Below are positions 1 to 45,368 of a stretch of 64,000 nt of DNA, piece after piece. Numbering within the stretch: the first letter of the stretch is position 1; each line of letters starts with the position of its first letter. Origin of the DNA: Botryllus schlosseri (taxonomy: Eukaryota). The position numbers and the translations under genes were made by a program. A model generated the notes under the pieces. It saw only the letters and a program-made list of their open reading frames with translations, ran no database searches and was not told the DNA's origin. Where the stretch lies: contig CM119383.1 of assembly GCA_051294905.1 (NCBI GenBank), positions 9,052,001 through 9,116,000 of the forward strand, written 5' to 3'.

Positions 1-14
1 CATGGCATATATTG

Positions 15-164
15 CATTCTCGGTAATGTCCATTCTCGGTGGTGTCCATTCTCGGTAATGTCCATTCTCTGTGGTGTCCATTCTCGGTAATGTCCATTCT
101 CGGTGGTGTCCATTCTCGGTAATGGCATTCTCGGTAATGGTTTTCTCGGTATTGTCCGGACACC
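15..164. repeat. 16-bp minisatellite with alternating A/B units (32-bp higher order), probably the end of a modular non-autonomous element
   Basis: CATTCTCGGTAATGTC and CATTCTCGGTGGTGTC alternate six times, followed by three degenerate units and CGGACACC. Confidence 0.85.
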
Positions 165-210
165 ATAAGATGTACCACTTCCATATTCAATGATTATGTG
201 TTTTATTCAG

Positions 211-489
211 GCAAGGAAAAATGTGTGTGTTCTTGGTCGGAATGGATGAATGCAGGCGGAGTATCAGAGGATGGTAGCGAGGACGAAACCTACACCGTGC
301 TTCGAGGAGAAGGATATAAGTTTTGCAAATCCCCAGTGGATATACAGTGTTACAATCATGAGTTAGAGCGACTTGTGGAGTCTACCAGCAACATTATATG
401 CGACGTAAATTTGGGAGCCAAATGCACTTTTCTCTGTGATGATGTCTCCGTACGAGTTGCATGCTGCTATTGCCCACCAGATACTATAG
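211..489 (+). CDS. Exon encoding a mucin-type WxxW (Mucin2_WxxW-like) domain
   Basis: ttcag|G acceptor and G|gtaagg donor, phase 1-1. Translation [52 protein letters not shown] fits the WxxW domain pattern. Confidence 0.8.
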
Positions 490-6400: not shown

Positions 6401-9400
6401 GCAGTTAAGTTTTTCACATTTTCCTACTTACCACAGGTCCTGAATTTCTTATCGCTTCACGGTCCTCCTCCGGTGGATGTTTGTCGGCGCCTCCTTACGG
6501 AAACACGTCAGCCGTCGTGGTCGCTGACGATTGTGATATAAATAACAAGAAACAGCAGTGGGCTTGGGTTTCGAGCAAGTCTATAAAAAACGTGGCGACC
6601 CAGCAGTGCTTGGCCTTCGTCGACAATGGTGTTTCGCTGCAAAACTGTGAAACTGGCTCTCGGACACAAAAATGGAAATACATTGATCGGAACTCGCTCA
6701 TTCAAATATACGACCGCTCAGGGTCTTACCTTCATAAGTCCGGAGGCTCTGTCGCCATGATGTCAAGCCGAGATCAGGACAGCAAATGGATCGCGCGAGT
6801 GGCGGAGGGTGAAACCGGCCTAAAGAATATGCGCTGTGAGTGTGACTGGGTGTCTTGAATTGAATAAAGTCTGCAGATTGATATCATTTGACTCGACCAC
6901 TGTTTTAACTCTATGTGGTAGGCCAACAGACTGTTTAAATGCATAATGCAGTATTTTGAAATCAGATTTTTCATCCAGTAAATTCACAATGGATATCATA
7001 CTATTGCAGGGGTTTTCAGCTTTTTTATGGTAGCGACCCAACTTCCAATTTGAAAATGTTGATCGACCCACTTCTAAAGATGTTGGAAAAAGAGAATCAG
7101 CACCTTTGCCAAGACCAAGTATTTGGTGGGAAGCTGATTAATAAAAACAAAAATCAGCACCTCTGCGACCCCCAGGTTGACAACCACTCTTCTAGCGGAC
7201 TTGTAATGAATTTTTGTTCCGTCAATTCAAAGTCTACTTGCCCTGGTACGCGGCTAATTTTATTTCACTTGCATTTGCAAGCAACATCTGTTCCTTTCCT
7301 GGTGAAATAAAGACGGCACAGGTAGCGTTAATTCAATTAATAGTAGGCTTTATCAACCATAATATTGGGATTTTCAAAGGTTTTCGCTGCTTGATGTGAC
7401 TGCATGAAAGATCATCGTTGCTGTTAGCGTAGTTGATTCTAAAACCGGGGGGGCCATTACGTCAACGTTTTCATTGACCTTCTCTGTTGTTCTCATCGTA
7501 TCTTCTCAAAAGTTCACAGACGTCCATTAAAACGATGACGGTAGTTGCGACCATGTCATATCTCGTCTATTGCATGTCAATTGCCTTGTATTACTTCCTC
7601 TGTGACGGTTATCAATTACTTGTTCAGATCCGAAGTGTGCTTCTCTCACGAAGCCGACTGACGGCAACTATTCATGCACTTTGGGAGATCACGTGTCGTC
7701 TGAATGCACATTTATATGCGATTATGGATATCGCTTACCGGAAGGTGCACCGGCTGCGTCGGAATGTACCGAGGACGGTTTCTTTCCGGAAGAGCCTTCC
7801 AACTGCAAAAGTAAAAATGAATTCATCATTTAATGTATTCGTTTTAATATCGTGTGTCAAGTTATCGCACTCGTGGCAATTTCCAGTTTCTAGATGAATA
7901 GTTTGAAATTTTGCAGTGTTGAGTTAAAGTAGAAGTATAAAATGATGCATAGGTCATAAGTTTCATGGTCAAGTCGTTTCAGATCATGCGATGCTGGCTT
8001 GTGCTCTGCAAATGTCAGCAACGATGTTCGGAAATATTTGTGATTAACAGGAATAGTGCCACAAAGATTATTTTTGATTATTTTCTATCTCAGTGAAATG
8101 GAAGAGCTCTATGATGAGTAGTTGCCATGGTAACAACACCCATCAAGGCCGCTGATTATCTTTGACTAAATTATCTTTCACTTCATCAAATCAGACAAAA
8201 TGATAACTGGGTGCCTAAATCCGGAAATTGGATGAAATAAAATAATGCACTAGTCAAAGATAGTTGCACCAGCAGTAGAAATGCAAGTTAATTGCTATAT
8301 TACTTTGTCCTGGGTTGCTAATATTGTATGTGAAGAGCTTCTTGGAGGTACAGAACTTCAATATACAATTGAATGATATATTGATATTGAAATGAACCCG
8401 AATATTTTCGGCTGACACTCGTCAAGGGTAATCGTCAGAAACTAGTAGAGAATTGGAAAGAACATTGTATATCAACAATCTATTACAAAGTATGACATCA
8501 CAGCCCACCGGCATGAAGTTTTGAAATAATCATAATCGAGGCGAAGAGAGCGCTAAAGCTCTATGTACTATTTTCGGGTGGTACAAGAAGTCCTTCTGTT
8601 GGCACAGACTAAGTAGGCTTATTTTGATAAGAGTCTATTCCAAGGCACCCAAATGAAAGTGAATGAACTAATATGTGAATGAATGAATGTTAGAGTACTG
8701 GTATATGATTGTTTACTTACTTCATGGAATATTTGTAATCATCAGGGATATTCATAGTGTTGCATAACTTTGACTACTGACATGAAGGTGTTTATCATTA
8801 GTAGGCCTACCAGTATGCATTTGTTCTTTCGTCTCATGAACGTTTGATCCAATGAATTCAGTGCTAAGCTCACAAATGGAAGTCTAATGTAAAGAGGTGG
8901 TTTTCCCCTCTCAGTTCTGCTCTGGTGCCTGCTGTTTTGTGAACAAGTTAATATTTGCTAAAGCTATAGGGGTACAGGTACATAAATGCAAGCTGTGGAA
9001 ATTGGTTGTTATACACAGCCAGCGATGGAGTGTCAAAATATACATAGTAATTTCAATGTTTGACTTTTGAAATCACCGTATGTGGAAGTGGCAGAATATC
9101 TTGTGATAATATCAGGACATGCTGTCTAGTATGATGTCATGTGCAAAAAATCAGATCTACTGTAGATAATGTTGCTAGGTCACTACATTCAGGGCTATAT
9201 AACAAGGGAGAGTTAATATCTTTGCAATATTTATCGTCCATCATTATCCATGAAGGCAGGGGATTAATATTATCATCCTTGCTGGGTTACTGGTGAATAT
9301 GATAATCTCCACCTAATCACTTTGTAGGTGTAGTGGGTGTGTTGTACCTCTTTGTCCCTAGTAATAAGGCAGGCTTGGTTAACATTCCACAGATTTTTAG

Positions 9401-12400
9401 AGTTTATACCGCTCTCTGATCGTTTCTACACCATTGTATGCATGGCGACTGAATTCTTTGTGAAAAGAAGTTCAGTATATTGGATACTTTGCTTTTTCTG
9501 GCGAATGCTCAGACATTCTGTACATCAATATTTATTGCCAAACAAACACTAAATTCTTAAAGACGCTGTATCTGATTCATTTGTTTGCTTTTGAAGGAAT
9601 CGAATGTCTGCCGAACGTCGACACTGTCGAACATGGTTCGGTGACATGCTCGAAGAAAAACCACTTGGATTCCGTCTGCACCTTCAGCTGCGGTGAAGGT
9701 TATGCTCATATTGGAAGCCAGGAAATTACTTGCAAGCAGGATGGTCAATGGAACCAGCCGATGCCCATCTGTAAACGTAAGTTCCTTGACTTCCGTGCAA
9801 ATCTTGTCGAAAACTCCGTTTGTCACTGTAAAACATGACTACTTGAGTGCTTGTGAAAAGTAGAATTGCTTTCGTTTTGCCAGAATCAGTTGTTTTTCCT
9901 ACAAAACAGAAAGTCAATAGACAAGTTAAACTAAGTTGCTTATCTCAATGGTACTTTCCTCAGCCTGGTGTTCTAGGATTAGTGAGTCAACCAAAGATTA
10001 ACATCTTTGGAAATCCTGAAGGTGTTTGATGTTGTCTTAATATAGTATTATGTCATAGGGTATTTTATGTGTGTGTGTTTAATATATATGTTACTTACTT
10101 TTGATTTAGTATGTTATACTGACTTTTGGTATGAACTGCATTAAGCTTTGGCTTATTAGTTGTTAAGTACCTAAATATGACACTGTCATTGTTTTACTGT
10201 ATAAAACAATTGAGAGAAATTGTAGATTGGTAGAATGCTAAGCATCCATGCTTCTGAAACATTTGAAGTGAATGGGAGTTGGAAGCATTTGGAATCGTCT
10301 TCATAACTGTATGTTTGAAATTTGAATGAACATGTACAAATATTACATTTACGAAAAAATTCGCAAATCAAGAACTCTGCTTTCCATTCGTTCTTACCTT
10401 TTCGAAGCATCGATGTTTTATCGATGATTTCATATTTTGCACAGCTTTTTTTTACTCAACAAGACAGTATACAATATAATCAAACAACACAACACATTAA
10501 TGAATCCAGTCTACCTTGGTATGAATGGGTTGTAATTTAGAAATACTGTTTTTGTATTGATCACGATCAAATATCAATATTCAAAGTTACCCCACAAGTA
10601 ACGGTAGACCGTAGTACCAGGAGGCCACAAGTCCAGAACTCGGGACTAGAGCATTGTGCACCACATGTTGGCTTCAACATAACACAATTTTTGTTCAAAA
10701 GTCATAGAAACAATTTTTCAAGGATGTGTTAGTAAAGTGGAATAGAGTTTAATCTAGAAATGTTGTCCTTATTATATGAAGTTACTGATGTCAATATGAC
10801 GTACCTAACTTGAAATGTAAAGCAACTGATGTCCTGTAATATGCTCCAGGGCATTCTTAATGAAACATTGTATTCCCATCAAAGTACAAGTAGATGCTTT
10901 CATAGATTACAACAAGTCTGAATAGGTCTACTTCCGATATGTGTCAGATATAATCTACCGCACAATCACAGTGTCCGCTCAATTTGTATGTGTAATTGTT
11001 TGGTCTTGTTGCAATGATTGTAAGATATGCAAGGCCCACAGAAAAGTTGTGGGAATTTATAGCAACAAGGGCATCAAGAAGAGTACCTTTTTATTCAACT
11101 TAGTGGATCTTGTGTCAACAACTTGAATGCATCCGGTTGGGTTGCTCTGTTGTATCGGTGGAGGAATTTGCTTGAAGAGTCTGTACACTGCATGCTTGAG
11201 TGTACTTGTTCAAGAAACGATATACAGCGAGTCAATAAATAATCTTAAAACCGTGAATCACACTCACCTGTTTGAGTTGACCCGTGTAAAAGCGGGAATT
11301 GAAGTCGGTGGTTGCAGAGTAAATGAGCCTGCTGATTTTACTTGTTGTGGTTGGCTAATATTTCCTGCCGTTACTGAACACAGTGAACAGAATGAAAAAT
11401 TCTGCTGTACACATTTTTGTATATTCAACAGTAGGCTACCATCAAATGTTATTCACAATGTGTGTTTTATTGTGTTGGCAGCATTGTAAGCAAGTTTGTT
11501 CGTACCATGAATGTATTCTGTTGATAGCACCTGAATTGGTTTATATTTTTTAACTGTGCCATTAAATGGTGGAAGAGTAATGTATTTTCAACAGTTACTT
11601 TATTCATTTTATCAATATATACTAGTTAAGATATTGGGTAGCTTCTTTTGTGACATTATACTTCAGCTGTTCTTGTGGCTTAGTAAATAGGTGATCGGTT
11701 GAAAGTCTTTCATTTGCGTAAGGGAAATCTGTTGATATCTTTCCTGCATGGTGTTGGAAAATATATCGGAATCAACCACATTGCAGAGATAACAAGCTCC
11801 TATCATAGAGCTATGTGTTATTAATTCTCAAACAGTCTAAAATACGTATATACTTGAATTAGATGTGATATACCCATTGAAACGCATCGCATGTCTACGT
11901 GACTTGACCATGTATCAAAACTACTTTGACATGCTCCAAAGCTATATCCTGGACTTGTTAGTACTGAAAAAGCATGATATATAATTAATTTATGTATAAT
12001 TATTATGAACTCATGATCAAAGATTGTACTGTGCAGCACCCACTGACTACACTCTGAAACTCAAGCACCTGCAAATGTCATGATTATTCAGAAGGGGATC
12101 AGATAATATTTCTATTTTTCTATGGTAATCATAAAATTCTGAGTGACGGGAATGAACAGAATTTAGAGCTGACAATAAGCCATGTTGCTTTCGTTTTATG
12201 CAGAGATCATGGGTGAATTTTGATTCTTGTCACGCACACACACAACATGATATTGTTACCAGTGTTAGGCCTATCCAAGACCTCACTCTGTCCATTGACG
12301 ATTGTTATGATGGAGTCTTCGCTTCTCTGAGATAGATGGCTAGGAATGGACAGAATCGAGTGCCTGGGAATTTCATTCTGGAATTGTTAAATGTATCGAC

Positions 12401-15400
12401 TCGAGACAGTAACCTATTTATGGAATTGTCTCTCATTCATTAAATACCGATAAGGGCCATTGCTGTATTACATTGATGCAGTTGATTGTTTCCGTACATA
12501 TAAATATATAATCTTAATACTGTTGTTATGTGAAACACAACAGTCGGTGGGGGTAGCCTGCATAAAAGACTTGATTCGGCCATTCATGAATTAAATATTT
12601 ATCTGGTATCGTTGTTAATTTGTCACAAACCTTCCGTCGAGACAAACTAATCTAAAGAACTATGGAATCCGATACTGGATTGAGGCGATCATAAGAAACA
12701 ATACCAGCATGTTATTGTAACCTACTTGACAAGGCGTATTCAAGAGCAATGTCCGTGTTTGCCACTCCCGATAGTTACCTCTCAGTAGGTATGTTACAAG
12801 CACTAAATTGCCTACTAGACCCATTGTATGCATGAAATGTAGGTACGCTTTGATGGTTCCCTTATTTTTGTATCACAACTATTGTTTATTTAGTTGCTAA
12901 TAGATTCAGTGTGGTAGTATCCTTTCTTGTCCCGAAATGGAAAATATGCTATTGATAGGTAACTGTGTGAAGTCATTGTTCCTCTAAAATCATTACCACT
13001 AATTAAATTGATTGTGTTTCTGTGATATTCTATTTTAAGAAGCCATGCTCTGTTAGGCCACAACTCAGCAACCCTGTTGCTTCCTTCCCATTACCGCAGA
13101 CCGTTGATAGATTAGGCTGGGCTTTTCACACTATGTCGCAATTACATCACACAATTCTGGTCGATCCAAAGTTTGCTTTGTCTCAATACACCTTCTGACC
13201 GACTCTGTCTTCATTTGTTTTGTAAAGTAAACATTATTATCCAAGCGATCCAGAGTTTACCATGCATGTGGTTGTAACCATTTTCGCGGTTATTGGAGGA
13301 CATAGTAGTTACCGATTTGGTAAATTTGGTTTCTGGTAAATTGCAATTCCATTTTTCGATATCATTAATGCCAGATAGTGTCTTGATACTCAATACGATG
13401 CGTCAATTGTCTGTAGATTTTATGGCAAACACTGATCATAACTAATAATTGCTTGGCGACTAGCACCAAACCCAATCATACACAATTAGCCATTCTTATC
13501 AGTCTTCGCATTCCTTGTTGTTGGCACGGACGTATAGGATAGGAAGATTTATTGACATGAGGCTATCTCAAGACAGGATTCATGCTTGGCGGCATATACA
13601 AAATTTGACTTTACCCGTCAATTTTCAGTTGCTGAATCATCGTTATCTTGTAAAATTTCTTGCTACTAGTTTTAGAGCGATTCTCTTGGTAGCCTAGGGT
13701 AGATAACACACTCTTCAACACATTATCCAGTGATGGAAGCTCCAGTCATAACATGGATTGATTGAATCTCTTCCAGTGAGTTCCACCCACCTTTGATGAT
13801 GCAATTTCGTGCCTACATCTTCAACGTTGCTGAACATTCGTATGTGTTTTCATCTAGCTGTATATCTTCACAAACTATTGTCTATTTGCTTCTTGTTTAA
13901 TGACACGATGTGTAACTTGTGAAACATTAATTCCACACATGCATTCCGGGATCGGTATCCAGAAAATGTCTTCAAATACGGTATTTGAGAGTTGTAAAAT
14001 CTTTCACATCACAGGTCGTTACATAGTTTAACGATAACTGATACAATCTCACTTTGACTTCTGTAGAGGGGCTTCAAAATAGAATATTGTTATATGTGGG
14101 ATGCTACTGTGAGGTAAATCTATCGTTCAAGTAGTTATAAAGAGACGCTTGGGAGTACAGAACTTCATGACACATTTGAATAAAATATTCATTTTATTCC
14201 CGAAGCTTTTCGGCTGACCCTCGTCAGGGGGAATATCGTCAGCAATAATACGAGAATTCGAATAACTATGTTCAGCAACAATATGTATCGCTAATTATGA
14301 CGTCACAGAGATAATATACAAAGTTGGGAAAACGAGAGAACTGCAGCGTTGGCATGGAGATAGATATCATTACTATGAGCAAACCTAGTCTATGCCAACA
14401 GAAAGAATTTGTGTATCATTTGAAAATCGCGCATTAACTTGTTTTGCTTCGCTATCTCCATGCCAACGGCAGGTAGATAGATAGATAGATACTTATAAGT
14501 TACAAAAACTGGGGAAATGTGATCGATTGCTAGATTTTGAGTTGTATTCATTATTGCTTAAGTGCAAAACACATGTATAAAAACCATAATGATTACTAGA
14601 AAGATGCTACAGGCTTATTAATAGGCATTTGGAACCACCAAATCATGTACAAAGATTGTGGTCCAGATACTTTTAAGCCTCTTGCTTCTGTTTTTCTACC
14701 TCTTTGTTGACTAAATAATATTATCTTCTAGTTAGCAGTACCACGTTCACGCTCCATATGTCGCCTCTCTAAACCATAGATTCCTTATCTTAAAGATTTT
14801 CTGTAACCTGCACTCTGCGACTCACTCTGGTATGCCCGACGTCATTTGATACAGGGTTACGTTGCTTGTTTAGGCATTTTAAATGCCAATGCCCGTTCCC
14901 TGAAGATTCGGTCTGTCTGACTAAAGGGCATCATGGATTCATGGTTACTATTGTTTGTGAACATTCGGACTTCCCGTGATACTTTTGAAATATTTTCGAA
15001 ATTACTGCTAAAGGCGCTATAATGTACTTTTCCAACAACGTAGACCAGGAATTTTATTGATGTTTTAAATGTGTATTAACATGGACCGTGAATTGAATTG
15101 TGCACACATCTGTCAGGTTTGGTATCTTATAATGTGTAATCGCGACTTTTGTTCAAATCCCATCGTAAAAGTATATATGTATATTCCAGGTGTACGTTGC
15201 GCGCCAGATTTGAAGAATTCTGGTATTGAAAATGGCTCGGTGAACTGCACGGACGGTGTGTACTATCGATCGAGATGTAGCTACATGTGTCAAGAAGGTT
15301 ATGAAATGATCGGAAGCGAAACTACCACTTGTCAAATCGACGAGACATGGGATCAGGACAAGCCTGTTTGCAACAGTATGTTTGCGTTGGTACTTGGTGT

Positions 15401-33400: not shown

Positions 33401-36400
33401 GCCTTCAGCTTGACCGCATGATGTCGCATGCTAAAAGTAACATTGTATCTTTCTACTCAAGTACGTCTAGTAGTAGACCTTTTCAAGTACGCAAAAATTT
33501 CGTATTCTAGGCATAAGAATGTAACTGTATACTGAAGTTAGTACCTCTAAGAAGCTCTTCAAGTAGAATTGCACCTACTTCGTTACTGCCCACCTCCGGT
33601 CGCCTGTGACGTCACAGTGAGTCCGTGGGTTGATTTAATGAAATGGTAGTATCCCTTTGAGTGATGTAAACGCTTATGGTTTCAAAAATAAGTCGCGTCC
33701 GGTTTCAGCGGTCAGCTGTTTGCGTCGAATAATTAGGCACCCTTGAACGATGTGTCGATATATCGAGAAATATGACAGTCGCGAAAGAACAGCCCGGTGA
33801 TGATTTTATAAGCGCAGCGGACATCTGCCGTCTATCCGTATTGTATGCGTAGTAATCGATAAAGCTGGCGTCGGAAAATCGTTTTCGCCGAGGCCCGGAA
33901 CAGATTCAGGAATTTCGCAACGGCGTGCGGTCGACTCTCGAAGTTCAACTCGTCTCGTGTGTGTTTGTATTTCCGCGGGGTATGGCTTTCTCGAGCGATA
34001 GAAGTGCTGGCACTGCGCTGCTGTGATTTGTTTTTGTACACTTTTAATATTAGAGTGTACGGCTTGGTCACGGACAGGCGGTGAGTGGCGTTGAAAGGGA
34101 TCGGGTTATTCCTTGTGTTGTTGTGGAGTACCTAGTTAGCGCAATGTGAATTGGTGTCTCTCGATTAATGTCAGTGTAATATCTGGTGGCTGTTAGGCGA
34201 AACTGAGCCTTCATATGCGAGCAGGGTTATTTCGTGTCTGCGTTTATATTGATTTTAGATTCGATCTTGTCAGAACATGGTAGGCTAGTTTGCTGAAGTC
34301 GACCCATTACCCTCGTGTGTAACAGCGTGAAGTATAGTCGTGTTTGCGGCTGTGGTAAACAGCCAGGTGTTGACATAATCGGTAATCGCGCTAGTAACAC
34401 CGTTGGTCGTGAACCATATTTGGTTTATTGAGGGTTTTTTCGAAGGGGATTGGAAGCTATTCCTGCCTAGCTAAATGAGGATTTGATGCGATGTGGATCG
34501 ATTGTTATTTTGATACGAGTGATTTGAAATGGATCAATCTTAACTGCCCGTGGCTTCGTAATTGTTCTTATTAGTCATGATGGTGTAGCGTCACAATCAA
34601 ATCTGCCTTGCGTCGTCAATTTTGATAGGTCTTGTTTAATTTAGTATCATGTACCTAATTTCAATGCCACCGGATTTAAATCTCGAAGATTTTAGTGAGA
34701 TATTGTGGTTTAAACGAAATTTGTAACACTCTATCGGATGTAGTGGATATTTATTTCTCTTTGAGTGATTCAAACCGGCGCAAACACATTTGATGTGTTT
34801 GGAATATATTGGATACTTCTTGATCACGCAGTAATCTTGTAAATCTATATTTGGCGAGCCTGGAGACATTTCCAAATGAGTGACGCGTTCGATATGATGG
34901 AAACCTAAATAGTGTCTTTTGAAATTGCATATCCGCCCCTATCGAGCGAGACGCCAATCCCTCGCGAAGTTATGAAAGTGAAATTTTGTTTTCCCGAAAA
35001 CAACGATCACCGAAGCGATCGGCAGCCTGTGTTCGAACACGAGTATTTTTGATATGCGTTGTCTGTTAAGGCTTCGCGGGGGCATCTTCGTAAGAACTTA
35101 TATCATTGCAGGCTTCAGTTGTTTTAGCTGGTGGAAAGCCGAGGTTTCGAGGAGGTGTTCATTACGCAGCGCTGAGACATCGTCGTTGCTAACGATAACG
35201 CGTGATTTTGCGTCGAGATATGCGCGTTTGTTACGAGATATTGTGAGAAATGGCTGTCGCCTGATATAATCGCGGTGGGATTTTAGAAATGATTGTGTTT
35301 CAAGGCGTTGCTTTGCAGACGCGGTACCGGGTCGCCGTAAGTTGAATATTATAACAGAACAATCCTACATATGTAATCCTCCTGTCGTATCATTGCCGCT
35401 TCCGACAAAGAAATATTTTTCTTATTGCTGGCTCTGTCGATAGCCCCCGAATCCCTCTAACATACCGCACAAATAACGGGCGCCTATAAGTCGGGAATAT
35501 TCGACTGAATCGGCCGGCTGATGAACTTGATGCTATGTTTGTTGTGGCGACCGATCGGGTTGTTTACAAATTGAAATGCTCGTTTCATCAGATGATCGAT
35601 ATCTTTAGAAATGGAGGCGAGGTTAGGACGAAGCATACGCAGCTCGATCGATTAAGTGTTGGTGATATATATCAGAAATGAGTTGATAATTATCGTATTA
35701 GCCGAATGTCAAGGATTGTATGTAATTAAAATTATTTTTTTCTGGATGTGAAATGTCAATCTTATAGTTAGCCTGCTAGAGTCGATGCTGTGAGCTGTGT
35801 AGTTGTTGAAGTGTATTTCCAATGTATCTATTCGTACCATCGCTATAGTCATCGTCATTTTGTTGAAATATTTATCAAATCAATACACCACAAGATTGCA
35901 ATATGGTGAAAAGATAGGAGGGTGTTGAAACGACTTGGAGTGGTCTTTTAGTCAGACACCCACCGTGGCCTACAGTATGTAAATAACAGGCATGCACACT
36001 GGATTTAAGAAAGGATAATGTAAAAGGAAACGACGAAAATGAATGCGGCATGTGTCGTTAGGCGAGGTCGATATGTCAGATTCTGGTCCGGTAATCTTGA
36101 GGGCTGACTAGTATTGCTTCAGTAGAAATTGCTTGTATTTCGATTTGATTGTGGATATGCTCGATGACTTTCGGATAGCCGGCGAGATGCTGTCCCACAC
36201 TACAGGTCCGGCATCCTTGATTTAGCGATGCATTCTTGTATTCCGTCCTGATCATATGGTAGTTGTTCTTCGAGGACGCGCGTGTGTTGTAGCTGTGCTC
36301 TTTTGCTGAAATCCATGCATTTCGTTTAGAACCTGATAATGCCACGGTGCTGTCCACGCTTAAAAGTACCACGACTACAACAACGGTGAAGCCGTCAACC

Positions 36401-39400
36401 GCCGTATCGTCGACGGAGGCGCCGACAACCCCGTTGAAGCCAACTACCACTTCAACGAGTGCACCTACTACTACATCAACCACAGAAGCTACAACAACTC
36501 CAAAATCAGTGGTACAGACCACCGCCGCCAAGCCCATGACCTTCAAACCCCCGTTGGAGTTTTGGTCCACAAAAAAACCTACAGCAACCACAATCATGAC
36601 GACCACAACGGGTATGCATTGAAATCGTTGTCATAGCTTTCCGCTATTGTCAATTCTGCTTTGAATATTTAGCCTTGTTATGTCACCTTTGTGCATATAG
36701 TTCTAGTATAGTGTAGTTCTATGTAGTAGAAATTGGATATTAAACTGAGGTGGTCAGAGTAGACTCATCGTTTTAACTCAAGAAGAAGTAGAATAACATA
36801 AGTTTCCACTTAAGTACAAGTAGAAATAGCCTTTAGCCTTCTTATGTCACCTTTATGCATATAGTTCTAGTAAACTGTAGTTCTATGTAGTAGAAAATGG
36901 ATATTCAACTGAGGTTGTCAAAGTATACTCATCGTTGTTACTCAAGAAGAAGTTGAATAACATAAATTTCCACGCAAGTGCAAGTAGAAATAGCAATTTC
37001 CGAGCAGGCCAAGTAAAAAAGTAAGAATTCTAGGTCTAGTTCTGCCTAAAAAAACTGAAACCTGTTAAGTAGGCTACACGTAAAAGTAGTCTAAAATCAA
37101 AATTTATTTAGTAAGCAGAGCAGTGCAAGTAAGGTAAACCTACTTGGAATACTTCAAAAATCAGAAGTATTTCGTTATCTACCACCTCTAATAATAAACA
37201 AGTGTTGATTAGCCTGCACGTCATCAGAACGAAGTCGGGATTCTGTGTGATCTTATCTATGATTGTAATATTTTTATTTAGGAACTGCCGGGCAAAGGTG
37301 CGTCTCCTCTGTTGCTTGTGATAATTGTCACAAGCGTGTGTCATTTGAACGAAGTGTTGCCCTATTTTATTTGACGGTATCATTTACAGCTAAGCCGAAA
37401 TCTACGGGCGGCTTGACATTCCCGGATGGCAACTCTGGTAAAAACGAGCCCGCTACCGGCGGGATACCGCTTTTTGTGTTTATCGCCATTGGTGTGGGCG
37501 TGGTTATCGTGCTGGTTGCTATCATCGTTTTCGTCGTGTGGAGGAAGAAATCGCGTCAGAAAACGAAGTATCGCAATGGAACGCTTGCACCGTACAAAAT
37601 GTGAGTTTACTAAGACTGTCGACTGGGGAAAATCCAGTATCTGATTGATTCGATTCCAAATTGAGTATTAGACCTCGAGTCGAATATTTTATTACTACTC
37701 ATGGCATCGTCACATCGATAATGATTATGTCAGTTCAAATATGCTCTTACTATGCAACAACAAAGAAAATAATGCCAGTAAGAGTATCTCTAGAGACTCT
37801 TGGAGGTACAGAACTTCTATATACAAATGAATAATGTATTCATATTGAAATATATCTGAATCGGTTAACACTCGTAAGGGTTAATCCTCAGCAACTAGTA
37901 GACAGACAGACATTGTTGCTGACAATTACCCATGAGGAGTGTCAGCCGAATATATTTGAGTTTATTCCAAAATGAATATGTTATTCAATTGTAGATGCCA
38001 TTGGCAAACTTGAAATTATGTTTGATTGAGTTTAACTGGCATTATTTACTTATGACCGAACAAAGTGTACGTGTTTGAACTCTTGAATTCTATCTTTCTG
38101 CCATGTCGCCATGATGAAAAGTATTGGAATACTCTCCACTCAAAGAATAGCACTCTATTCAAAATAGAATGACCCAGGTTCTCGATTTTGTCCAGCCCAA
38201 GCTGTAATGCCGCGACACAAAAATTTACCAATATTATGCGCCATCTTGTGACGCCTGTTGTATTCCGTAGGAGCAGCAGGGCTGACCACACTGAGCTCGG
38301 CCCACTGATACCGAACGGGCACAACACGGGCCCCAAGAAATTCGGCTCCATATCCATGGACCGACTGGAGATGGAATACAATCGGAAGCACGCAGACGAC
38401 GATAAGCTGTTCCGAGAAGAATACCACGTAGGGCGTCTCTTGTTTTGAGACGCAGCGATTGCTTGTGACGCGTGATGCTTTTTTTCGACAGGCTCTGGCT
38501 GACGGTACGGGCAGCAAGGAGGCCGGTTGCAGGGCGAAAAATAAAAACAAGAATCGATACACCAACATTCTTCCATGTAATTATGTTGCTGCGCTTATTG
38601 AATCCTTACTAGGCTGCGTGTGATTATGATAATCTGTCTTTAGTCTTGGGTTTCAAGTTGCAGTAATACAGCTATTGTACGGTCAATTACATTACTATTA
38701 GAATTACATTCCCAAATTTTCAATTAATATAATAATTGCAGAACTTTTTTCAATCCAATTCTAATTACAAATACGTGAATTTTTTGCAGTCGCTTACGAT
38801 AAATTACTTTGCAATATATAGTATCCGAGGTCTTCGGTTTTCGTCCGGCTTTAGATGCACTGCTGTTTTTAAAGTAAGAATGCTATTCAGTGTTCTACAT
38901 GATGCTAGTATACAAGATGTTTGTCATTAGATATCTGTGTTTGTGATCCAATGCGCAGCAGATGGATGTGCGGCACAAGTGCATTGCAAGACTATGGGAT
39001 AATTATTATAGTCCAACCCAAGGTTTGCGGGTGATGTACTTACAATGGAGCTCAGTAGGCAAATCTTCATTTTCCTATGATAAACAAGCTTATTAGATTT
39101 GCCATTGTGAACCCTCCTGAGAGTATACTAAAATTCAGCCTAGATTTACTTGAAATTCCAACTTCCATTATTTCTATACATCGCGTTAACGGAATAAGAA
39201 AAATCCATTATCACTTGAAACTAATATTCAGGAAGTCGCTTTTGGAGATGGATAAATACATCACCAGTGACGTGCAGTAGATGCGAGTAACTCATTGCTT
39301 ATCTTGTGTATATATTCTGCGCTGGTGGTTCTCGTCCTGAAATTGTCCCCTCGCACTGGCCTTCCACTTGTGTACCCCCTTGTCTAACAGAATAAAATTT

Positions 39401-42400
39401 AGTGACGTTGTTTCCACAAAAATAGCAAATGAAACGTATATTCTTCTTGAAATGAACCCCATAAGACAGTATTCGACTTTGACTCTGCAAAAATAGCTCT
39501 AAAATCTTAATAATTTAAACAGCACTACTAATGTCTCGCTTGTATTTTATTTTCAGTCGACCACTCCAGAGTCATTCTGCCGAAAGTGGGAATCGACGCA
39601 GACTCCGATTACATCAACGCTTCCTTCGTCGACGTACGTCTCACGCTCGGTTATCAGTTTTCGTGTCAATATTCAATTCCGTCGCCCGTTCTCAGGGCTA
39701 CAAGCACAAGGGCAAATTTATCGCGGCGCAAGGACCGAAAGAGAACACCATCGACGATTTCTGGAGGATGATCTGGGAGCAGAACGTATCGACCATAGTT
39801 ATGGCCACGAATTTAGAGGAGAGGAAAGAGGTACCACGCATTTGTGTTGGGTTAGAAAAATAGGATTTTCACTGTTTTTCCATTTGTGAAGTCAATAGCT
39901 CCTATGCTGCAAAATAAAGCGGAAGTACTCTGTTACTGACTACTTTTCGGTATCTCAAGGTGACCAATCACCATTGATCTCTGGCTGCCTATTCCAGCTC
40001 AAGTGCGCGAAATACTGGCCGTCGGGCACCAGTGAAAATTACGGAGAACTGATGGTCCATACGCTGGGAGAGAATCACCTGGTCGACTTTACGATAAGGA
40101 AGTTTACGATACAGCGGGTCGCGGTACGTACCTCACTGGCTCTGCCTTGAATGCTTCTTAGCTATTATCCTGCTCCATTTCTTCAGGCAAACGTGGAAGC
40201 CAGTCTTAGCGTGAAGCGTAACGTAACGCAGTACCATTTCACGAGTTGGCCCGACTTTGGGGTGCCAAAGTCGCCATCCGGCATACTGAAGTTCTTGCGA
40301 AAAATCAAACACAGTAGTCCGACTGGGTTTGGTCCGATTGTTGTCCACTGCAGGTAACTGGCGGCTTCGTTTGATTTTTCAAAATATGAAGGGAAAGGAT
40401 AGTAGCTTCCCCTTAAAAACTGTTAAGTAGAAATGAAACTAGTTTAAAGTATAATGTTGCTAGAAGATAAAAACCTACTTCGAAAATGTGTGACATACCT
40501 CTGTGTATTCGCGGAATTAATGCGTACGTTTTTGCTTGCGCAGTGCGGGCGTCGGCCGGACCGGCACTTTCATCTGCATCGACGGCATGATGGACATGAT
40601 ATCGCGAGAGAACAAAATCGACGTGTTCTCGTTTTCCTCGCAAATGCGTCAGCAGAGGCCGGAAATGGTGCAGACCGAGGTGAGGCTCGTGTGCGATAAG
40701 AAAGTTTGCTTGCGCGGATCGTCGCTTCCTAAAATTCAGAGTTTTGGACATTGTTACGCAGCAAATTACTAGAGGTGGTCGAAGCATTCAGCTCTGCCAC
40801 TCAAGTAGAAGTGGAAGTACAGTCCTGAGTCCTGACTTAGACCTAATATCCAATGGCTAGGAACGTAGAATGCCGAGTCCAATATTACTTTAATGTTAGC
40901 GACACATAAAACGAATAAGGAATACTCGTACCAACGACCGCGTTGCAATATAAGGTAACGTGATAATAATTTAGTTTTACCTAAATAACAGGAGGTTTTT
41001 TTTTTGAAAAAATCAAATACTCAAATACAATACGCAAAAATTTTGACTTCTTTTTACCTTGAAAAACTTAATTTCGACCTCATGCATGCAAATTAGGTGT
41101 TTTCGCACATACTGTTAGAATCGTACTACTTATGTTCGTTTCTGGTTGGAACTGTCTCTCCTTACGAAATAGTTTATCCTGAAAAAAACTTTGACTTGAA
41201 AACTGACAAATTTTTACATCGAAAAAACTTTATTTTATCGAAATTTTTACCTATGAAGAATTCCAGCAGTTACGTCACACATTTTGGTAGAAATACTTAA
41301 AATTTGTTGTAGTACAACAAGAGATACGTTCCTACATTCTAGGGTAGAAAGTGTCTATCTTTACTAAGCATCTTGCCAAGCATGGTGAAAGAACGTTCAA
41401 CAACAGCAGTTGTTGGCTTCATTCTGTCAATGTTGTCTACATCACAATTTTTCGTCATGCGCTCCTTGATATAAGAGCCAATGCCACACAGTCTTGCTTC
41501 AGTTAGGATATTGTGGTACGTTCAGCATAACAACATGTCAACCTATTCGTTTCATTTGAGCGTTTATGATTCACAATGAGCTGACAATGGGCTGTCTACA
41601 ATGGTACGCCTATATAGTAGGCTACAAGCTGTAAAATGTCAAATGATAAGTTCACCGACAGTGCAAACATCTACGACACAAACGAAATGCAGGTTGCAAA
41701 AACATTTTGACTTTGCAAACAATTTTGCCAATTTTTTAACCTAACGCTACAATTTTGACATGTCCAAAACAGAATCGCCCTACTGATAACTCCTCCTCCG
41801 ATTAACTTCCTAAAGTATTTGACGCCTAGACCAAATCAAGTTTTCGAAACTGTTTTGAGTACTTTCATTTCCTACCTTTACATGAGTAGCATTGCCGACT
41901 ACTTTGACTGGCTTTGATTCTCGGTGGATTCCACGTAAGCCTAATATGAAAACGCGCTTTAATCTTATTTCTCAAACATCACAGCAACAATACATCTTCA
42001 TATACCAAGCCGTACTCGAGCACCACCTGTACGGCGATACAGAAGTGGAGGCGTCCGAAGTGTCGGCTCACATAGAAGAGCTGATGCAGAGGCTGCCCGG
42101 TAACGTAACGGGCATGGAACACGAATTTAAGGTAAGATTCCACGTCTCTGTGCCTGGGTTTCGGGCAGGTTAATTCTTACATCGCATTTCGTGTCTCTCT
42201 CTCAGAAATTAACGTCAATCCAAATTCAAAAGGAGCACATGCGTGCCGGCAATCATCCCGCGAATATGCGCAAGAATCGAGTTTTGTTAATTTTTCCATG
42301 TGAGTCGGTTTGGATTTTCTCTCGTCGACCCGTTTGCAAATGCTTGCTTCTTGCAGATGATTGGAACAGGGTTATGCTGCCCATGAAGAGGGGGCAAGAA

Positions 42401-45368
42401 AACACAGACTACATCAACGCTTCATATATTGACGTGAGTGTATTTTGTGTTCAATACAATGTAATTTCTATTGTGTCTGAGTAGGAATCGCGAATTTTTA
42501 TATCCTCGATCAGCAACAATGGGTGTGGTTCTCAATTCAGCAAACTGTAATCTAAATATTCGTTCTGCAGCAGACTCCGGCAATTTATTTATCTTTCAAG
42601 TTGTTTTCAATAGAATATGGTGCTCAAAATACGGTAACCTAAGCGTGAGGCACTTGGTTTATCGCTGCAGACTACTTTATATGCAGAGGTGAGCAAAGTA
42701 GCCTGCGTTGCTCCTTGACCAGAAGTAGAAGTTACTCCATAAATTTGTGCTCGGTTACATGTAGAAATAGCGATTTGCAAGACACGTCAAAACCGCTTCA
42801 AGGGGTGGCAGAAAATGAATTGAAAAGTTGGTGCATTTGGTCGAGACGTTTCATACTTGTAGCATATTATCTTAGATGGGTAATCTGGAAATTTTTAGAT
42901 GCGTCTTCAATGCAAAATGACTAACGAGGCTGCAAATAGGTGCGATCTTCAAAAATATATCCACTTATCATGACACAGGGTTATTTCACTGCAAACTTAT
43001 CCCATAACTACTTTCTATTAATCAAAATCCTGAGTGAGACAAAAATAAATGTTTTGCAAGAAGATCTAGTAGACAAAACCTGGGTCTGTACTATTCCGCA
43101 AGAGTAAAAGTACTTCATTGCTGACTAAGTCTGTTTGTATGCGCTCTTCAATTTGACAATGTCTCCAAATTACATCGCTGCAGGGTTACCGACAGAAAGA
43201 CGCCTACATCGCGACGCAAGGTCCTCTGCCGCACACAACGGAAGATTTCTGGCGGATGATCTGGCATTACGAATGCGCGTCTATCGTCATGCTTACCGAG
43301 ACGGTGGAGCGAGGCCAGGTGAAATGCGCGCAGTACTGGCCCAACGAAGGCGTCTCCACGTTCGGGGACATCGACGTCGAACTGGTGACGAGTTACGAGA
43401 ACGAGTATTATACCGAGAGAGATTTTAAAGTCACGAACTTATCTTCAACGGAACGTAAGGAGCTCATTGTGAAACAGGTAAGGGAAGTGTGCGTCGAAGG
43501 CTTACGAAAGCTGATGGTTTGGATGTGTGATTTGTTCAGAGGTCAAAGTCAGAGTTGTAACCAAGTCACAAGTCCATCTAACTTTTTAGTTTTGACTCGA
43601 GTCAAGTCCAAGTCAGTTAGTAGAGGGTCGAGTCCAAGTCATTGTGTTCGCTGTTCAGTTTTGAGTTGAATTCACTTTTTTCCACTCTGCTCGAGTGATA
43701 TAGAATGGCTCGCATTCATAATGTAGTATTTTTCCTCCATTTACACAGTTTCTGGTCTATTCTGCAAACGCCAGTAATGATAGACGAAATACCAATAATG
43801 TGGTACCTTTAATATTCTTCGAAGTTACTATGAAATGTCTGTCTTTGCCGTCCTTGTCTCGAGTCATATGACTTGGTTCGAGTCATGCACAATGACTCGA
43901 GTACAAGTCGATTCTATACAAAAATTGACTCGAGTCAAGTCGAGTCACCGGAAAATCGCGACTCGAGTCTGACTCAAGTTGAGTCATTACAACCCTGGTC
44001 AAAGTAGCCATTGTATGTCCTCTAGTACAAGTGCTAGTGGAAATAGCAATTTCCAAGTAAGTAAAAGGTTCAGAGGAGGCAACATAGTCATCGTCGGCAC
44101 GTAAGTAGAAGTAAAAGTAACCTTGTAAAATTTTACTCAGGTACAAGTAAAAGAATCTTATCTTTAAATGTGCCACGAGTTAGAGAGTTTACCGGCGAAA
44201 TGTAGTCTCCACTGCCCTGCCCTGCATAGATCAAGTCCCAGTCCATGTCCCATTCATTCTGTTGAGGCGATATTTGAATTCTATTCCGCGTTTGCAGTTC
44301 CACTATCACGACTGGCCGGAAGTGGGCGCTCCTGTTTCCGGGTACAGCATGATCGAATTAGTGGACGCCGTCCAGAAACAACAACAAAACTCCGGCAATC
44401 ACCCGATCGTTGTGCACTGCAGGTGAAGTATACAGGATTTTACATCATGTTGATAGACATTACGACTGGTCACCATGGCCGTATCCTCATAACAAGCATC
44501 TGCAACTCAGCTCAACAGCGGTACCATTACTTTGGCTTGAATCGTTTCATTTGGATTCGCTGGCAAAACAAGGCCAAATTTAGATTTTATCTTGTGTCGT
44601 TTTTCCGAACTTTATGACCTATCTGTTTTAACTGTTAATACTGTTTATCTGTGGTCACTCCTCGCGTTACTTCCCAAGTGGGTATCTGATTTCAAGTCAT
44701 TTCGTCGCCTTCCCCTCTTTTCATTGCATCGCAGTCTTGTAGTGTTTGGAAATGATGAAATTCTTAGTAATCTAATACTCCTGTGAATTAAATTGTCATA
44801 ACAGATAGACGAAGCAGCCTCGATATCACTGTAACTGAAATATATTTTTGACAATTGACTAAATCTAGTTTTAACTATGCGAGTACTTTTTAGACGGTTT
44901 ATTTTTTTCTGCATCCACTCGACATGTGTTAGAAATTACGACATTGCAACTACTTCTACTTGAGTACCAACGTTGATTAGAGTGTGGCAGCGTAGATGGC
45001 GATATATACAAAACCGTTCTGTCAAAGTGGCCCTATATATTTTCAAATTTTGCGCATCACCGTATTTTTGGTAATGATGATTTCCGTGATTACAGTGCTG
45101 GCGGTGGCAGGACAGGTGCGTTCTGTGCGCTGTCGACTGCCCTCGAACAAGTCAAAGCCGAAGGCGTCTTGGACATGTTCCAAATCGTGAAGTGCCTGCG
45201 CATGCAACGGCCGCATATGGTGCAAGACTTAGTGAGTGCCACCGGCAGGATTGAGCTGGTCACAAATTTCATGAACTGTCTTCTTTTCAACAGGATCAGT
45301 ACGAATTTTGTTACCGAGCCGTGCAGGAATATATTGATTCCATGAGTGAATATTACAACTTCAAATGA
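211..45368 (+). CDS. PTPRA/PTPRE: Receptor-type tyrosine phosphatase, R4 (PTPalpha/epsilon) cytoplasmic region with a WxxW + ricin-lectin + 14x sushi + Thr-rich ectodomain; 5' end lies outside the window
   Basis: Exons traced by GT-AG sites and frame continuity: 211-489, 6437-6835, 7628-7810, 9597-9776, 15190-15375, 15437-15613, 17563-17736, 18818-18991, 19059-19250, 19742-19918, 20577-20753, 22973-23149, 24666-24842, 27375-27554, 28342-28521, 29677-29856, 36330-36611, 37390-37600, 38271-38427, 38492-38576, 39557-39633, 39696-39830, 39998-40123, 40187-40353, 40544-40679, 41985-42131, 42206-42299, 42357-42433, 43184-43477, 44298-44422, 45096-45231, 45294-45368 (TGA). Total 5516 nt. Joining the ectodomain exons to the PTP exons is inferred from phase compatibility, not from transcripts. 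Confidence 0.8.
3449..3555 (-). mobile_element. Degenerate copy of the same hammerhead-bearing repeat
   Basis: Minus strand reads TACCC-CTGACAAGC-GAA-AATATT-C-GGGTAT (stem II deleted). Shares the acttcaatatacaattga flank. Confidence 0.55.
4168..4397. mobile_element. Possible DINE-1/Helentron-like short element
   Basis: GTGAATTTGGCAC start, degenerate TTAG(G) run near 4345-4375, GTGGCCGCCAATTGTCGAATTC end. A related AAATTCGGCAC array lies at 3298-3410. Confidence 0.35.
6437..6835 (+). CDS. Exon encoding a ricin B-type (beta-trefoil) lectin domain
   Basis: ccacag| acceptor and |gtgagt donor, phase 1-1. Shows GGCLSA..DCD..KQQW, QCLA..LQNC..RTQKW and DSKW, i.e. the three QxW-type repeats. Confidence 0.8.
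7628..7810 (+). CDS. Sushi/CCP exon 1
   Basis: [60 protein letters not shown]; AG/GT flanks, phase 1-1. Not present in the ORF track. Confidence 0.8.
8333..8515 (-). mobile_element. PLE terminal-repeat-like fragment with a mutated hammerhead motif (8395-8430)
   Basis: Minus strand reads TACCC-TTGACGA-GTGTCAGCC-GAA-AATATT-C-GGGTT. The flanks are nearly identical to the 16.7-kb copy. Confidence 0.65.
9597..9776 (+). CDS. Sushi/CCP exon 2
   Basis: [59 protein letters not shown]; phase 1-1. Confidence 0.85.
14146..14320 (-). mobile_element. PLE terminal-repeat-like fragment with an intact minimal type I hammerhead motif (14195-14235)
   Basis: Minus strand reads TATTCCCC-CTGACGA-GGGTCAGCC-GAA-AAGCTT-C-GGGAATA. 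Confidence 0.7.
15190..15375 (+). CDS. Sushi/CCP exon 3
   Basis: [61 protein letters not shown]; phase 1-1. Confidence 0.85.
15437..15613 (+). CDS. Sushi/CCP exon 4
   Basis: [58 protein letters not shown]; follows a 61-nt intron. Confidence 0.85.
16671..16845 (-). mobile_element. PLE terminal-repeat-like fragment with a hammerhead motif (16735-16770), inverted against the adjacent PLE ORF fragment
   Basis: Minus strand reads TACCC-CTGACGA-GTGTCAGCC-GAA-AATATT-C-AGGTT (one stem I mismatch). Confidence 0.7.
16847..17280 (+). mobile_element. Penelope-like element fragment (RT thumb and linker, ending at the start of GIY-YIG)
   Basis: [52 protein letters not shown], then after a frameshift [46 protein letters not shown]. 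These are PLE-typical motifs with stops. Confidence 0.8.
17563..17736 (+). CDS. Sushi/CCP exon 5
   Basis: [57 protein letters not shown]; phase 1-1. Confidence 0.85.
18818..18991 (+). CDS. Sushi/CCP exon 6
   Basis: [57 protein letters not shown]; phase 1-1. Confidence 0.85.
19059..19250 (+). CDS. Sushi/CCP exon 7
   Basis: [63 protein letters not shown]; follows a 67-nt intron. Confidence 0.85.
19742..19918 (+). CDS. Sushi/CCP exon 8
   Basis: [58 protein letters not shown]; phase 1-1. Confidence 0.85.
20577..20753 (+). CDS. Sushi/CCP exon 9
   Basis: [58 protein letters not shown]; phase 1-1. Not present in the ORF track. Confidence 0.85.
21421..22688 (-). mobile_element. Internally deleted hAT (Charlie/Buster-like) element with a transposase dimerisation-domain relic
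   Basis: 16-bp TIR CAGGGGTCACCAACCT; perfect TSD CCCTAGAG (21413-20 and 22689-96). Minus strand reads ..[34 protein letters not shown]. Confidence 0.9.
22973..23149 (+). CDS. Sushi/CCP exon 10
   Basis: [58 protein letters not shown]; phase 1-1. Confidence 0.85.
23191..23330 (+). mobile_element. tRNA-derived SINE, copy 1
   Basis: A-box-like AGCGTAATGG and B-box-like GGGTTTAATCCC, followed by GGGTCAGACCAAAGAC. Homologous to 47536-47625. Confidence 0.6.
23364..24237. repeat. Apparently identical 437-bp tandem duplication
   Basis: 23364-23800 equals 23801-24237 as far as I can compare by eye. The ORF track shows identical 60-aa ORFs 437 bp apart. Confidence 0.95.
24666..24842 (+). CDS. Sushi/CCP exon 11
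   Basis: [58 protein letters not shown]; phase 1-1. Confidence 0.85.
25631..27172. mobile_element. Non-autonomous hAT element
   Basis: TIR CAGAGG(C/T)CTCAAAC, subterminal GCGGCCCGC motifs, perfect TSD GTCTAAAT (25623-30 and 27173-80). Confidence 0.85.
27375..27554 (+). CDS. Sushi/CCP exon 12
   Basis: [59 protein letters not shown]; phase 1-1. Confidence 0.85.
28342..28521 (+). CDS. Sushi/CCP exon 13
   Basis: [59 protein letters not shown]; phase 1-1. This frame is not in the ORF track. Confidence 0.85.
29677..29856 (+). CDS. Sushi/CCP exon 14
   Basis: [59 protein letters not shown]; gtaagt donor, phase 1-1. Confidence 0.85.
30347..30488 (+). CDS. Candidate alternative first (signal-peptide) exon or cassette exon of the PTP gene
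   Basis: ATG at 30347 gives [47 protein letters not shown], ending at a phase-1 G|GTAAGT donor (30489) that is in frame with the Thr-rich exon. A pyrimidine-rich acceptor (tttttctacaag|, 30395/6) and a second ATG (30416) lie inside it. Confidence 0.35.
36120..36310 (-). mobile_element. Degenerate 3' end of a CR1/L2-type LINE ORF2
   Basis: Minus-strand [14 protein letters not shown] resembles the conserved HxYxTR tail, also seen as HSYGTRSKSSSN in the LINE at 58.9 kb. Confidence 0.4.
36330..36611 (+). CDS. Thr/Ser/Pro-rich mucin-like stalk exon
   Basis: [34 protein letters not shown]...TTIMTTTT; tttag| acceptor and |gtatgc donor, phase 1-1. Confidence 0.85.
36668..36994. repeat. Diverged ~164-bp tandem duplication of a MITE segment
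   Basis: TTTAGCCTT(G/C)TTATGTCACCTTT..AAGTAGAAATAGC occurs at 36668 and 36832. Confidence 0.8.
37390..37600 (+). CDS. Transmembrane exon
   Basis: [27 protein letters not shown] followed by the basic stop-transfer [11 protein letters not shown]; ends in phase 2. Confidence 0.9.
37790..37995. mobile_element. Inverted pair of degenerate hammerhead-bearing PLE repeats
   Basis: 37790-37900 matches the family in the usual orientation. 37910-37995 is the reverse copy (TACCC-ATGAGGA-GTGTCAGCC-GAAT-ATAT at 37927-37960). Confidence 0.55.
38271..42131 (+). CDS. PTPRA/PTPRE: Juxtamembrane/wedge region and catalytic PTP domain D1 (8 exons)
   Basis: [23 protein letters not shown] (cf. PTPRA [23 protein letters not shown]), [66 protein letters not shown]. 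All catalytic motifs are intact. Confidence 0.97.
42206..45368 (+). CDS. PTPRA/PTPRE: PTP domain D2 and C-terminal tail (6 exons)
   Basis: [92 protein letters not shown]. Closely matches PTPRA D2 and its tail (EYIDAFSDYANFK). Confidence 0.97.

Follow-up and report, generated by a model that had tools for sequence, protein, structure and literature searches.

Analysis of a 64,000-nt stretch of the Botryllus schlosseri genome (positions 9052001-9116000 of contig CM119383.1 in the 495.5-Mb assembly GCA_051294905.1; hereafter, the window) indicates that its plus strand carries all but the first exon of a single ~48.5-kb gene for a receptor-type protein tyrosine phosphatase (RPTP) of the R4 subtype. 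The gene appears to be the pro-orthologue of the vertebrate PTPRA/PTPRE pair, and the predicted ectodomain joins a mucin-type CysD domain, an R-type lectin and 14 sushi (CCP) modules, a set that appears to be specific to ascidians. We put the probability of this joint reading at about 85%; a lectin-tip and Src mechanism that we infer for the protein is weighed separately below.

Gene model and extracellular modules

Short open frames follow one another along the plus strand of the window from 138 to 45368. For each of them, candidate splice acceptors (AG) and donors (GT) were listed and the frame-keeping pairs were taken, giving 32 exons in the window (211..45368, +) with AG/GT borders throughout and a joined coding sequence (CDS) that has no internal stop and ends with the TGA at 45366-45368. 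An upstream exon supplies an ATG and a hydrophobic signal peptide whose end reads ...DIPP, in agreement with the N-termini of the ascidian orthologues; its donor (CTG/GTAAGT) is in phase 1. With this exon included, the gene has 33 exons and a CDS of 5,619 nt that no stop interrupts. The predicted product is a type I membrane protein of 1,872 amino acids (aa) in which the signal peptide is followed in order by CysD/WxxW, the R-type lectin, 14 sushi modules, a Thr/Pro-rich stalk, a transmembrane (TM) helix, a wedge, and the phosphatase domains D1 and D2; the helix begins at residue 1218. Every ectodomain exon (CysD, lectin, 14 sushi, and the Thr-rich exon) is phase 1-1, which makes the two long junctions, 489->6437 and 29856->36330, frame-compatible, and both are canonical and in frame. 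By its phases, this exon series bears the signature of shuffled modules.

An initial annotation, made from the sequence of this DNA, had placed the gene at 211-45368, with an ectodomain of ~1,200 aa and with WxxW, ricin-type lectin, 14 sushi, and Thr-rich exons upstream of the phosphatase on one strand and in one phase. The module series agrees with the Pfam matches, the splice phases, and the stop-free CDS, and the ectodomain length agrees with the position of the TM helix. The 3' end of the gene was also placed correctly, whereas 211 proved to be the acceptor of exon 2, the gene itself starting ~3.1 kb upstream of the window.

Pfam scans, run on single-exon open frames, identified Mucin2_WxxW (PF13330) at 138-518 (E 3.6e-8), and the closest sequence matches of this exon in the PDB were the CysD domains of MUC5B and MUC2. 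Ricin_B_lectin (PF00652) was found at 6409-6855 (E 2.5e-12, 47.5 bits), together with CysR_MRC2_N (PF24562), which is of the mannose-receptor type; PDB sequence matches of the lectin exon were the abrin B chain, the lectin domain of GalNAc-T2, and the CysR domain of DEC-205. By sequence, exon 3 belongs to the R-type (ricin B) lectin fold family, with putative sugar binding. Sushi was detected in 14 separate exons, each above the Pfam gathering score (E 5e-5 to 1e-12), and the repeats have the expected form of sushi/CCP modules, being ~60 aa long with four Cys and a conserved Trp, one phase 1-1 exon per repeat. The stalk between sushi 14 and the TM helix comprises 118 aa (32% Thr, 12% Pro, 10% Ser) and is presumably O-glycosylated. 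The same scans gave no C-type lectin or EGF match in any exon, and the architecture is not that of a selectin.

Placement of the phosphatase domains

The cytoplasmic part contains two full-length tandem PTP domains, as detected with hidden Markov models (HMMs), and motif scans found KNRY, DYINA, and WPD-type motifs in the correct order twice, in D1 and in D2. The large D2 exon alone matches Y_phosphatase in Pfam (E 1.5e-30). D1 appears competent by sequence, all catalytic motifs (KNRY, WPD, SAGVGRTG, and the Q loop) being intact, and D2 carries PTPalpha-type substitutions (KNRV, WPE, SAGGGRTG) with the active-site Cys kept. An 11-residue stretch of the wedge matches PTPalpha ADDNKLFREEF, and the C-terminal tail SEYYNFK resembles PTPalpha SDYANFK (YxNFK type); the choice of D2, wedge, and tail residues for this comparison follows established knowledge of PTPalpha.

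Phylogenetic analyses of the PTP domains place the protein within R4. For a FastTree analysis, the 150 best representatives and the ascidian proteins together contributed 247 full-length PTP domains; the ascidian D1s and the ascidian D2s each formed one clade, beside PTPepsilon-named and amphioxus PTPRA/epsilon-like proteins. Concatenated D1+D2 sequences were then analyzed with IQ-TREE (54 rows, 586 columns, LG+G4, rooted on PTPzeta), with rows added for named PTPRA, LAR-like/PTPdelta, kappa-like, PTPzeta, mosPTP-1, and Hydra 'alpha' proteins; P0200 (965 aa, three PTP domains) was excluded as a probable mis-assembled model. The resulting topology, (amphioxus x4, (ascidians x6, (PTPRA x6, PTPRE x3))), recovers the chordate phylogeny within R4, with support of 99/99 for ascidians with PTPRA/PTPRE, 96/95 when amphioxus is added, and 99/97 for the wider clade that includes the echinoderm relatives. 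D1 and D2 cluster with PTPRA/PTPRE and apart from the R2A, R2B, R5, and CD45-like subtypes.

Similarity rankings gave the same picture. Among the 120 best matches of the cytoplasmic part of the Styela orthologue, 119 were PTPRA or unnamed PTPalpha-like proteins (60-61% identity over 99%), the top match being an unnamed and likely mis-assembled three-domain entry. In the PDB, PTPalpha D1D2 scored 848 bits and PTPepsilon 768, ahead of PTPsigma/LAR (~549), CD45 (437), and PTPzeta/gamma (~400). A search of the genome found this to be the sole R4-type locus, with 51-90% identity per exon (mostly >64%), whereas other PTP loci reached 59% at most. Because the tree, the named-match and PDB rankings, and the single R4-type locus in the genome all point the same way, the locus is best described on sequence grounds as the single tunicate pro-orthologue of the vertebrate PTPRA/PTPRE pair. 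The R4 PTPalpha/epsilon assignment of the initial annotation is supported by the tree, by the named matches, and by the PDB matches. Judged by its sequence, the protein is an R4 member by descent that departs from classical R4 architecture: classical ectodomains are glycosylated, module-free, and no longer than ~140 aa, and only the 118-aa stalk of the ascidian protein fits this description.

A further tandem phosphatase was noted in the genome. At G000:C10:28329103-28330812 (+), an 875-aa open frame with no introns or stops spans a D1-D2 phosphatase with 36% identity to the R4 query, possibly an RPTP-like gene that is intronless or was retroposed.

Transcript continuity and origin of the ectodomain

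Evidence on the unity of the gene came from a related species. The 98-aa D2 exon was searched profile-free against 1.84 billion representative proteins, and the best match, P0001, is a protein of 1,853 aa that is collinear with all exons of the window. It derives from a single Logan contig, SRR32906199_5464 (5,825 nt), in which the whole open reading frame (ORF) is intronless and which is therefore mRNA-derived; no spliced leader was evident at its 5' end. In this species, the sushi array and the phosphatase lie on one mRNA. A full-length search with P0001 as the query returned four more proteins of equal Pfam content, all remaining matches being sushi-only. These four are database models of the same architecture: Styela clava LOC120339059, Clavelina lepadiformis LOC143458809, a Phallusia mammillata protein named 'Receptor-type tyrosine-protein phosphatase alpha', and an nr/EukProt entry with the automatic name 'SVEP1-like'. 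A look-up of P0001 in the ESM Atlas gave only PTPalpha-like and kappa-like clusters with scores of 0.75-0.76 and was uninformative. The initial annotation had taken the lectin and sushi exons as part of the phosphatase gene, and the identical architecture of these five orthologues, one of them on an intronless contig, bears this out. For B. schlosseri itself, the case for a single transcript rests on the intact frame, the splice phases, and the strict collinearity with the mRNA-derived contig and the four gene models of other ascidians.

Conservation extends to the individual repeats. By an HMM derived from the 14 repeats of the window itself, each of the six ascidian proteins has exactly 14 sushi modules, and repeat i found its best match in repeat i for 13-14 of the 14 positions in the two closest orthologues, and mostly so in the distant ones. 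This position-wise orthology argues that the array is old and stable and that neither recent nor concerted expansion produced it. Ectodomain identity is ~49-52% to the stolidobranch orthologues and 40-42% to the others; the corresponding cytoplasmic values are 84% and 75-77%, with 85% over D1+D2 for Styela. It is hardly credible, then, that the locus is decaying or chimeric, that is, a pseudogene or a set of unrelated neighboring exons joined in our reading. The lack of RNA reads from B. schlosseri over the tested exon would fit such a locus, but the CDS is stop-free across 33 exons with all splice sites canonical, the catalytic motifs are intact, the identities to the stolidobranch orthologues are those just given, and the ricin exon occurs in many small, probably transcriptomic, runs.

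Several points nevertheless weigh against our reading of the locus. Four RNA runs from B. schlosseri (three subsampled at 6-13%, one a contig set) gave no joints and left the stalk exon uncovered at 36330-36429; these reads were aligned to 30430-36429, a stretch reaching from within the 6,475-nt key intron into the stalk exon, in which a joint from the candidate internal first exon discussed below or loose ends at the 36330 acceptor would show. All of the raw reads, like those contigs that lay close to the stalk exon, aligned solely with 36030-36270, an intronic repeat, and a protein search with the stalk exon, meant to catch short transcript fragments, found no match. Of the words of the ricin exon, 0.4-0.88 were present in at least 14 small runs of the same organism (contigs of 7-135 Mb), and the four of these that an earlier search had also covered contained just 0.05-0.20 of a mostly intronic 10-kb stretch; this pattern fits transcriptomes expressing the ectodomain, but the RNA nature of these runs is a guess. 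As to the R4 placement, the tree model was LG+G4 without a mixture, and several outgroup clades were labeled through a single named representative. The YxNFK tail was dropped as an R4 hallmark, LAR-like and kappa-like RPTPs carrying similar (YANF-type) tails, and is nonspecific to R4.

The repeat within the key intron is an interspersed element of ~306 nt (36000-36306, +) that ends 24 nt before the stalk acceptor. Copies 80-89% identical to it lie on many contigs, with >3,000 candidates at first look, and RNA reads originating from other copies align to 36030-36270 and leave unmatched ends at either side.

An alternative is that the region holds two transcription units. One would encode a CysD-lectin-sushi protein, secreted or anchored in another way, that stops after sushi 14; the other would be a short PTPalpha gene of vertebrate type whose first exon, coding for a signal peptide, lies in the large intron. 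In a weaker form, such products exist as extra isoforms alongside the full-length one. Within the 6.5-kb intron, 30347-30488 (+) is an ATG-initiated, signal-peptide-like frame of 47 codons whose strong phase 1 donor (GCG/GTAAGT) fits the 36330 acceptor, so that a short, vertebrate-like PTPalpha could be made. Moreover, an AATAAA lies ~20 nt past the sushi-14 donor (29857-29885, +), where an unspliced transcript would run on for 20 codons to a stop, and vertebrate PTPRE has alternative promoters. We nevertheless regard two units as very improbable. The intronless contig of the related species and the four database models connect sushi 14 to the stalk and phosphatase, and the matches of 338-1,074 aa obtained with the Styela cytoplasmic part included no short ascidian isoform, although a protein so nearly identical would rank at the top. 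The candidate exon 30347-30488 has no Pfam match; no read or contig covers 30430-30488, although the stalk exon is equally uncovered, so that this gives no verdict. A secreted, ectodomain-only isoform made by intronic polyadenylation at 29857-29885 is conceivable and unsupported.

With the single R4 gene as the preferred reading, the origin of its ectodomain can be considered. The initial annotation had left two alternatives, an ancestral R4 architecture trimmed in vertebrates and a lineage-specific product of exon shuffling; of these, the second is favored because amphioxus and echinoderm R4 relatives carry different ectodomains. Taken as annotated in their records, amphioxus members of the R4 clade have fibrinogen-C+Ig+FN3, fibrinogen-C+EGF+FN3, Ig+EGF+FN3, or short ectodomains, and a sea-cucumber relative has Calx-beta+HYR+EGF+Ig+FN3. 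Sushi, WxxW, and ricin modules are all absent from the other 149 best D2 relatives, and in the full-length search the sushi+PTP combination was confined to ascidians. On these sequence comparisons, the CysD-lectin-sushi set is ascidian-specific among the sampled proteins and was most likely inserted, as phase 1 exons, after the signal-peptide exon and ahead of the stalk.

That the lectin-sushi ectodomain is instead the ancestral R4 (or olfactorean) state, trimmed to a stalk in vertebrates, seems improbable. In length and composition, the ascidian stalk does resemble the ectodomain of vertebrate PTPalpha, and a short stretch directly ahead of the TM helix is similar in both (TF-PDGNSG versus TFPPSGNSD). 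Large ectodomains are also usual among the R4 relatives of invertebrate deuterostomes, so that being large may be ancestral. However, what the amphioxus and echinoderm forms share is Ig+FN3, which the ascidian proteins lack. The likeness of the stalk suggests, without proving it, that the vertebrate PTPalpha ectodomain corresponds to the ascidian stalk alone. Because Ig/FN3 is common to the amphioxus and echinoderm forms, a modular ectodomain of this type may have come first, with tunicates later replacing it and vertebrates losing it.

Exons of the R4 phosphatase gene (positions numbered from the first letter of the window)
Feature	Position	Strand	Evidence
Exon 1, signal peptide	about -3142..-3040 (L003:6858-6960), ~3.1 kb upstream of window	+	splice donor, orthologue N-termini
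Exon 2, mucin-type CysD/WxxW, phase 1-1	211..489	+	Pfam PF13330, PDB MUC5B/MUC2 CysD, splice sites
Exon 3, ricin-type (R-type) beta-trefoil lectin, QQW/QKW/SKW motifs	6437..6835	+	Pfam PF00652, PF24562, PDB matches
Sushi 1	7628..7810	+	Pfam, splice sites, orthologue repeats
Sushi 2	9597..9776	+	Pfam, splice sites, orthologue repeats
Sushi 3	15190..15375	+	Pfam, splice sites, orthologue repeats
Sushi 4	15437..15613	+	Pfam, splice sites, orthologue repeats
Sushi 5	17563..17736	+	Pfam, splice sites, orthologue repeats
Sushi 6	18818..18991	+	Pfam, splice sites, orthologue repeats
Sushi 7	19059..19250	+	Pfam, splice sites, orthologue repeats
Sushi 8	19742..19918	+	Pfam, splice sites, orthologue repeats
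Sushi 9, best conserved repeat (~70% identity to stolidobranch orthologues)	20577..20753	+	
Sushi 10	22973..23149	+	Pfam, splice sites, orthologue repeats
Sushi 11	24666..24842	+	Pfam, splice sites, orthologue repeats
Sushi 12	27375..27554	+	Pfam, splice sites, orthologue repeats
Sushi 13	28342..28521	+	Pfam, splice sites, orthologue repeats
Sushi 14	29677..29856	+	donor GG/GTAAGT at 29856, the key junction to 36330
Stalk, first part of Thr/Pro-rich mucin-like stalk, phase 1-1	36330..36611	+	splice sites
Stalk end, transmembrane helix, basic stop-transfer segment	37390..37600	+	
Juxtamembrane region with wedge, matches PTPalpha wedge region	38271..38427	+	
D1, KNRY	38492..38576	+	
D1, DYINAS	39557..39633	+	
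D1	39696..39830	+	
D1	39998..40123	+	
D1, WPD loop and VHC active-site start	40187..40353	+	
D1, SAGVGRTG and Q loop	40544..40679	+	
D1-D2 linker	41985..42131	+	
D2, KNRV (Tyr to Val, as in PTPalpha D2)	42206..42299	+	
D2, DYINAS	42357..42433	+	
Large D2 exon, 98 aa, query of representative search	43184..43477	+	Pfam Y_phosphatase
D2, WPE and VHC active-site start	44298..44422	+	
D2, SAGGGRTG	45096..45231	+	
Last coding exon, tail ...SEYYNFK, stop 45366-45368	45294..45368	+	

The remainder of the window holds other elements. Positions 1-165 (+), outside exon 2, are an abundant short repeat resembling a miniature inverted-repeat transposable element, with dozens of copies 96-99% identical, often with an inverted partner ~130 nt away. 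A tRNA-Ser gene (anticodon CGA) at 47975-48058 (+), 2.6 kb beyond the stop codon of the phosphatase gene, is the sole Rfam match at the gathering threshold in the window. Transposon remains occupy 56590-60125 (+): the first ORF (56590-58383) has a reverse transcriptase domain, and the next (59538-60125) is for a DDE transposase of the Harbinger/PIF type. On the minus strand, 62099-63640 is an intronless ORF of 514 aa with all three ATP synthase alpha/beta-family domains.

Proposed function and comparison with known systems

Vertebrate PTPalpha and PTPepsilon are major activators of Src-family kinases, whose inhibitory C-terminal tyrosine they dephosphorylate, and wedge-mediated dimerization restrains the phosphatase. 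To our knowledge, vertebrate R4 ectodomains have no clear ligand, and regulation from outside the cell is an open problem. In the ascidian protein, the CysD domain and R-type lectin could form a tip presented far from the membrane to glycan or matrix ligands, the 14 CCP modules serving as an extended spacer, as in selectins and complement receptors. Engagement or clustering by ligand might then tune D1 through wedge and dimer control, towards Src-family kinases, as for PTPalpha, and the phase 1-1 exons would permit isoforms with fewer repeats. The CysD/R-type-lectin tip on its 14-CCP stalk could be a real module for binding glycan, matrix, or cell-surface ligands, so that ascidians would couple carbohydrate or adhesion recognition outside the cell directly to Src-family activation by way of their sole R4 phosphatase, but we consider this doubtful. 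A selectin-like glycan or adhesion receptor, an immune role, and Src regulation, all suggested in the initial annotation, are likewise inferences, drawn from the domains present and from what vertebrate PTPalpha does. The retention of the ectodomain repeat for repeat across ascidian orders implies selection on an extracellular function.

If the lectin tip does bind a ligand, the protein would be the first of the R4 RPTPs in which a ligand-binding domain can be identified, and this in a tractable chordate, and the ligand-less vertebrate ectodomain would be a remnant after replacement or loss in a once modular receptor. The differing ectodomains of ascidians, amphioxus, and echinoderms show that the R4 cytoplasmic module is an old cassette with lineage-shuffled sensors, and Ciona, Phallusia, and Styela offer systems in which extracellular control of an R4 phosphatase could be studied. 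The protein sequences are already public under automatic names (NCBI/UniRef) and do not represent a new class of molecule; in full-text literature searches, no account of an R4 phosphatase with sushi or lectin modules came to light. The one published expression pattern found is that of a Ciona gene named Ptpra, which is notochord-specific and mosaic in embryos; the paper also reports YXNX motifs and leaves the ectodomain unmentioned (PMC11728170). This gene may be the Ciona orthologue, although the main text gives no gene-model identifier; if it is, the expression points to development rather than immunity.

Among known receptors, selectins are similar in layout, being type I membrane proteins whose N-terminal lectin is raised on an array of CCP modules, but the likeness is an analogy of design, not membership: the ascidian lectin is R-type and not C-type, EGF is absent, and a tandem phosphatase takes the place of a short tail. 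CR1/CR2-type receptors with CCP arrays are looser analogues, and the R-type lectin at the tip recalls the mannose-receptor family, as the CysR_MRC2_N and DEC-205 matches indicate. Closer by descent are the amphioxus proteins (Branchiostoma 'PTPRA' CAH1242919 and XP_035698254) and Apostichopus XP_071851386, which fall in the same D1-D2 clade and have large modular ectodomains, but without CysD, ricin, or sushi modules. Apart from the ascidian orthologues, the closest are the vertebrate R4 phosphatases PTPRA and PTPRE, whose ectodomains are short and heavily glycosylated. The ascidian protein shares with them the wedge, an active-type D1, a KNRV/WPE D2 that keeps its Cys, the YxNFK tail, and a sister position in the tree, and its membrane-proximal Ser/Thr/Pro-rich segment is comparable to their whole ectodomain. 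Identity to PTPRA is that given above for the Styela cytoplasmic part and ~53% for the window protein when the stalk and TM helix are included. The ascidian protein differs from the vertebrate ones in an N-terminal extension of ~1,050 residues, made up of the CysD, lectin, and 14 sushi modules, and in being encoded by a single gene instead of an alpha/epsilon pair.

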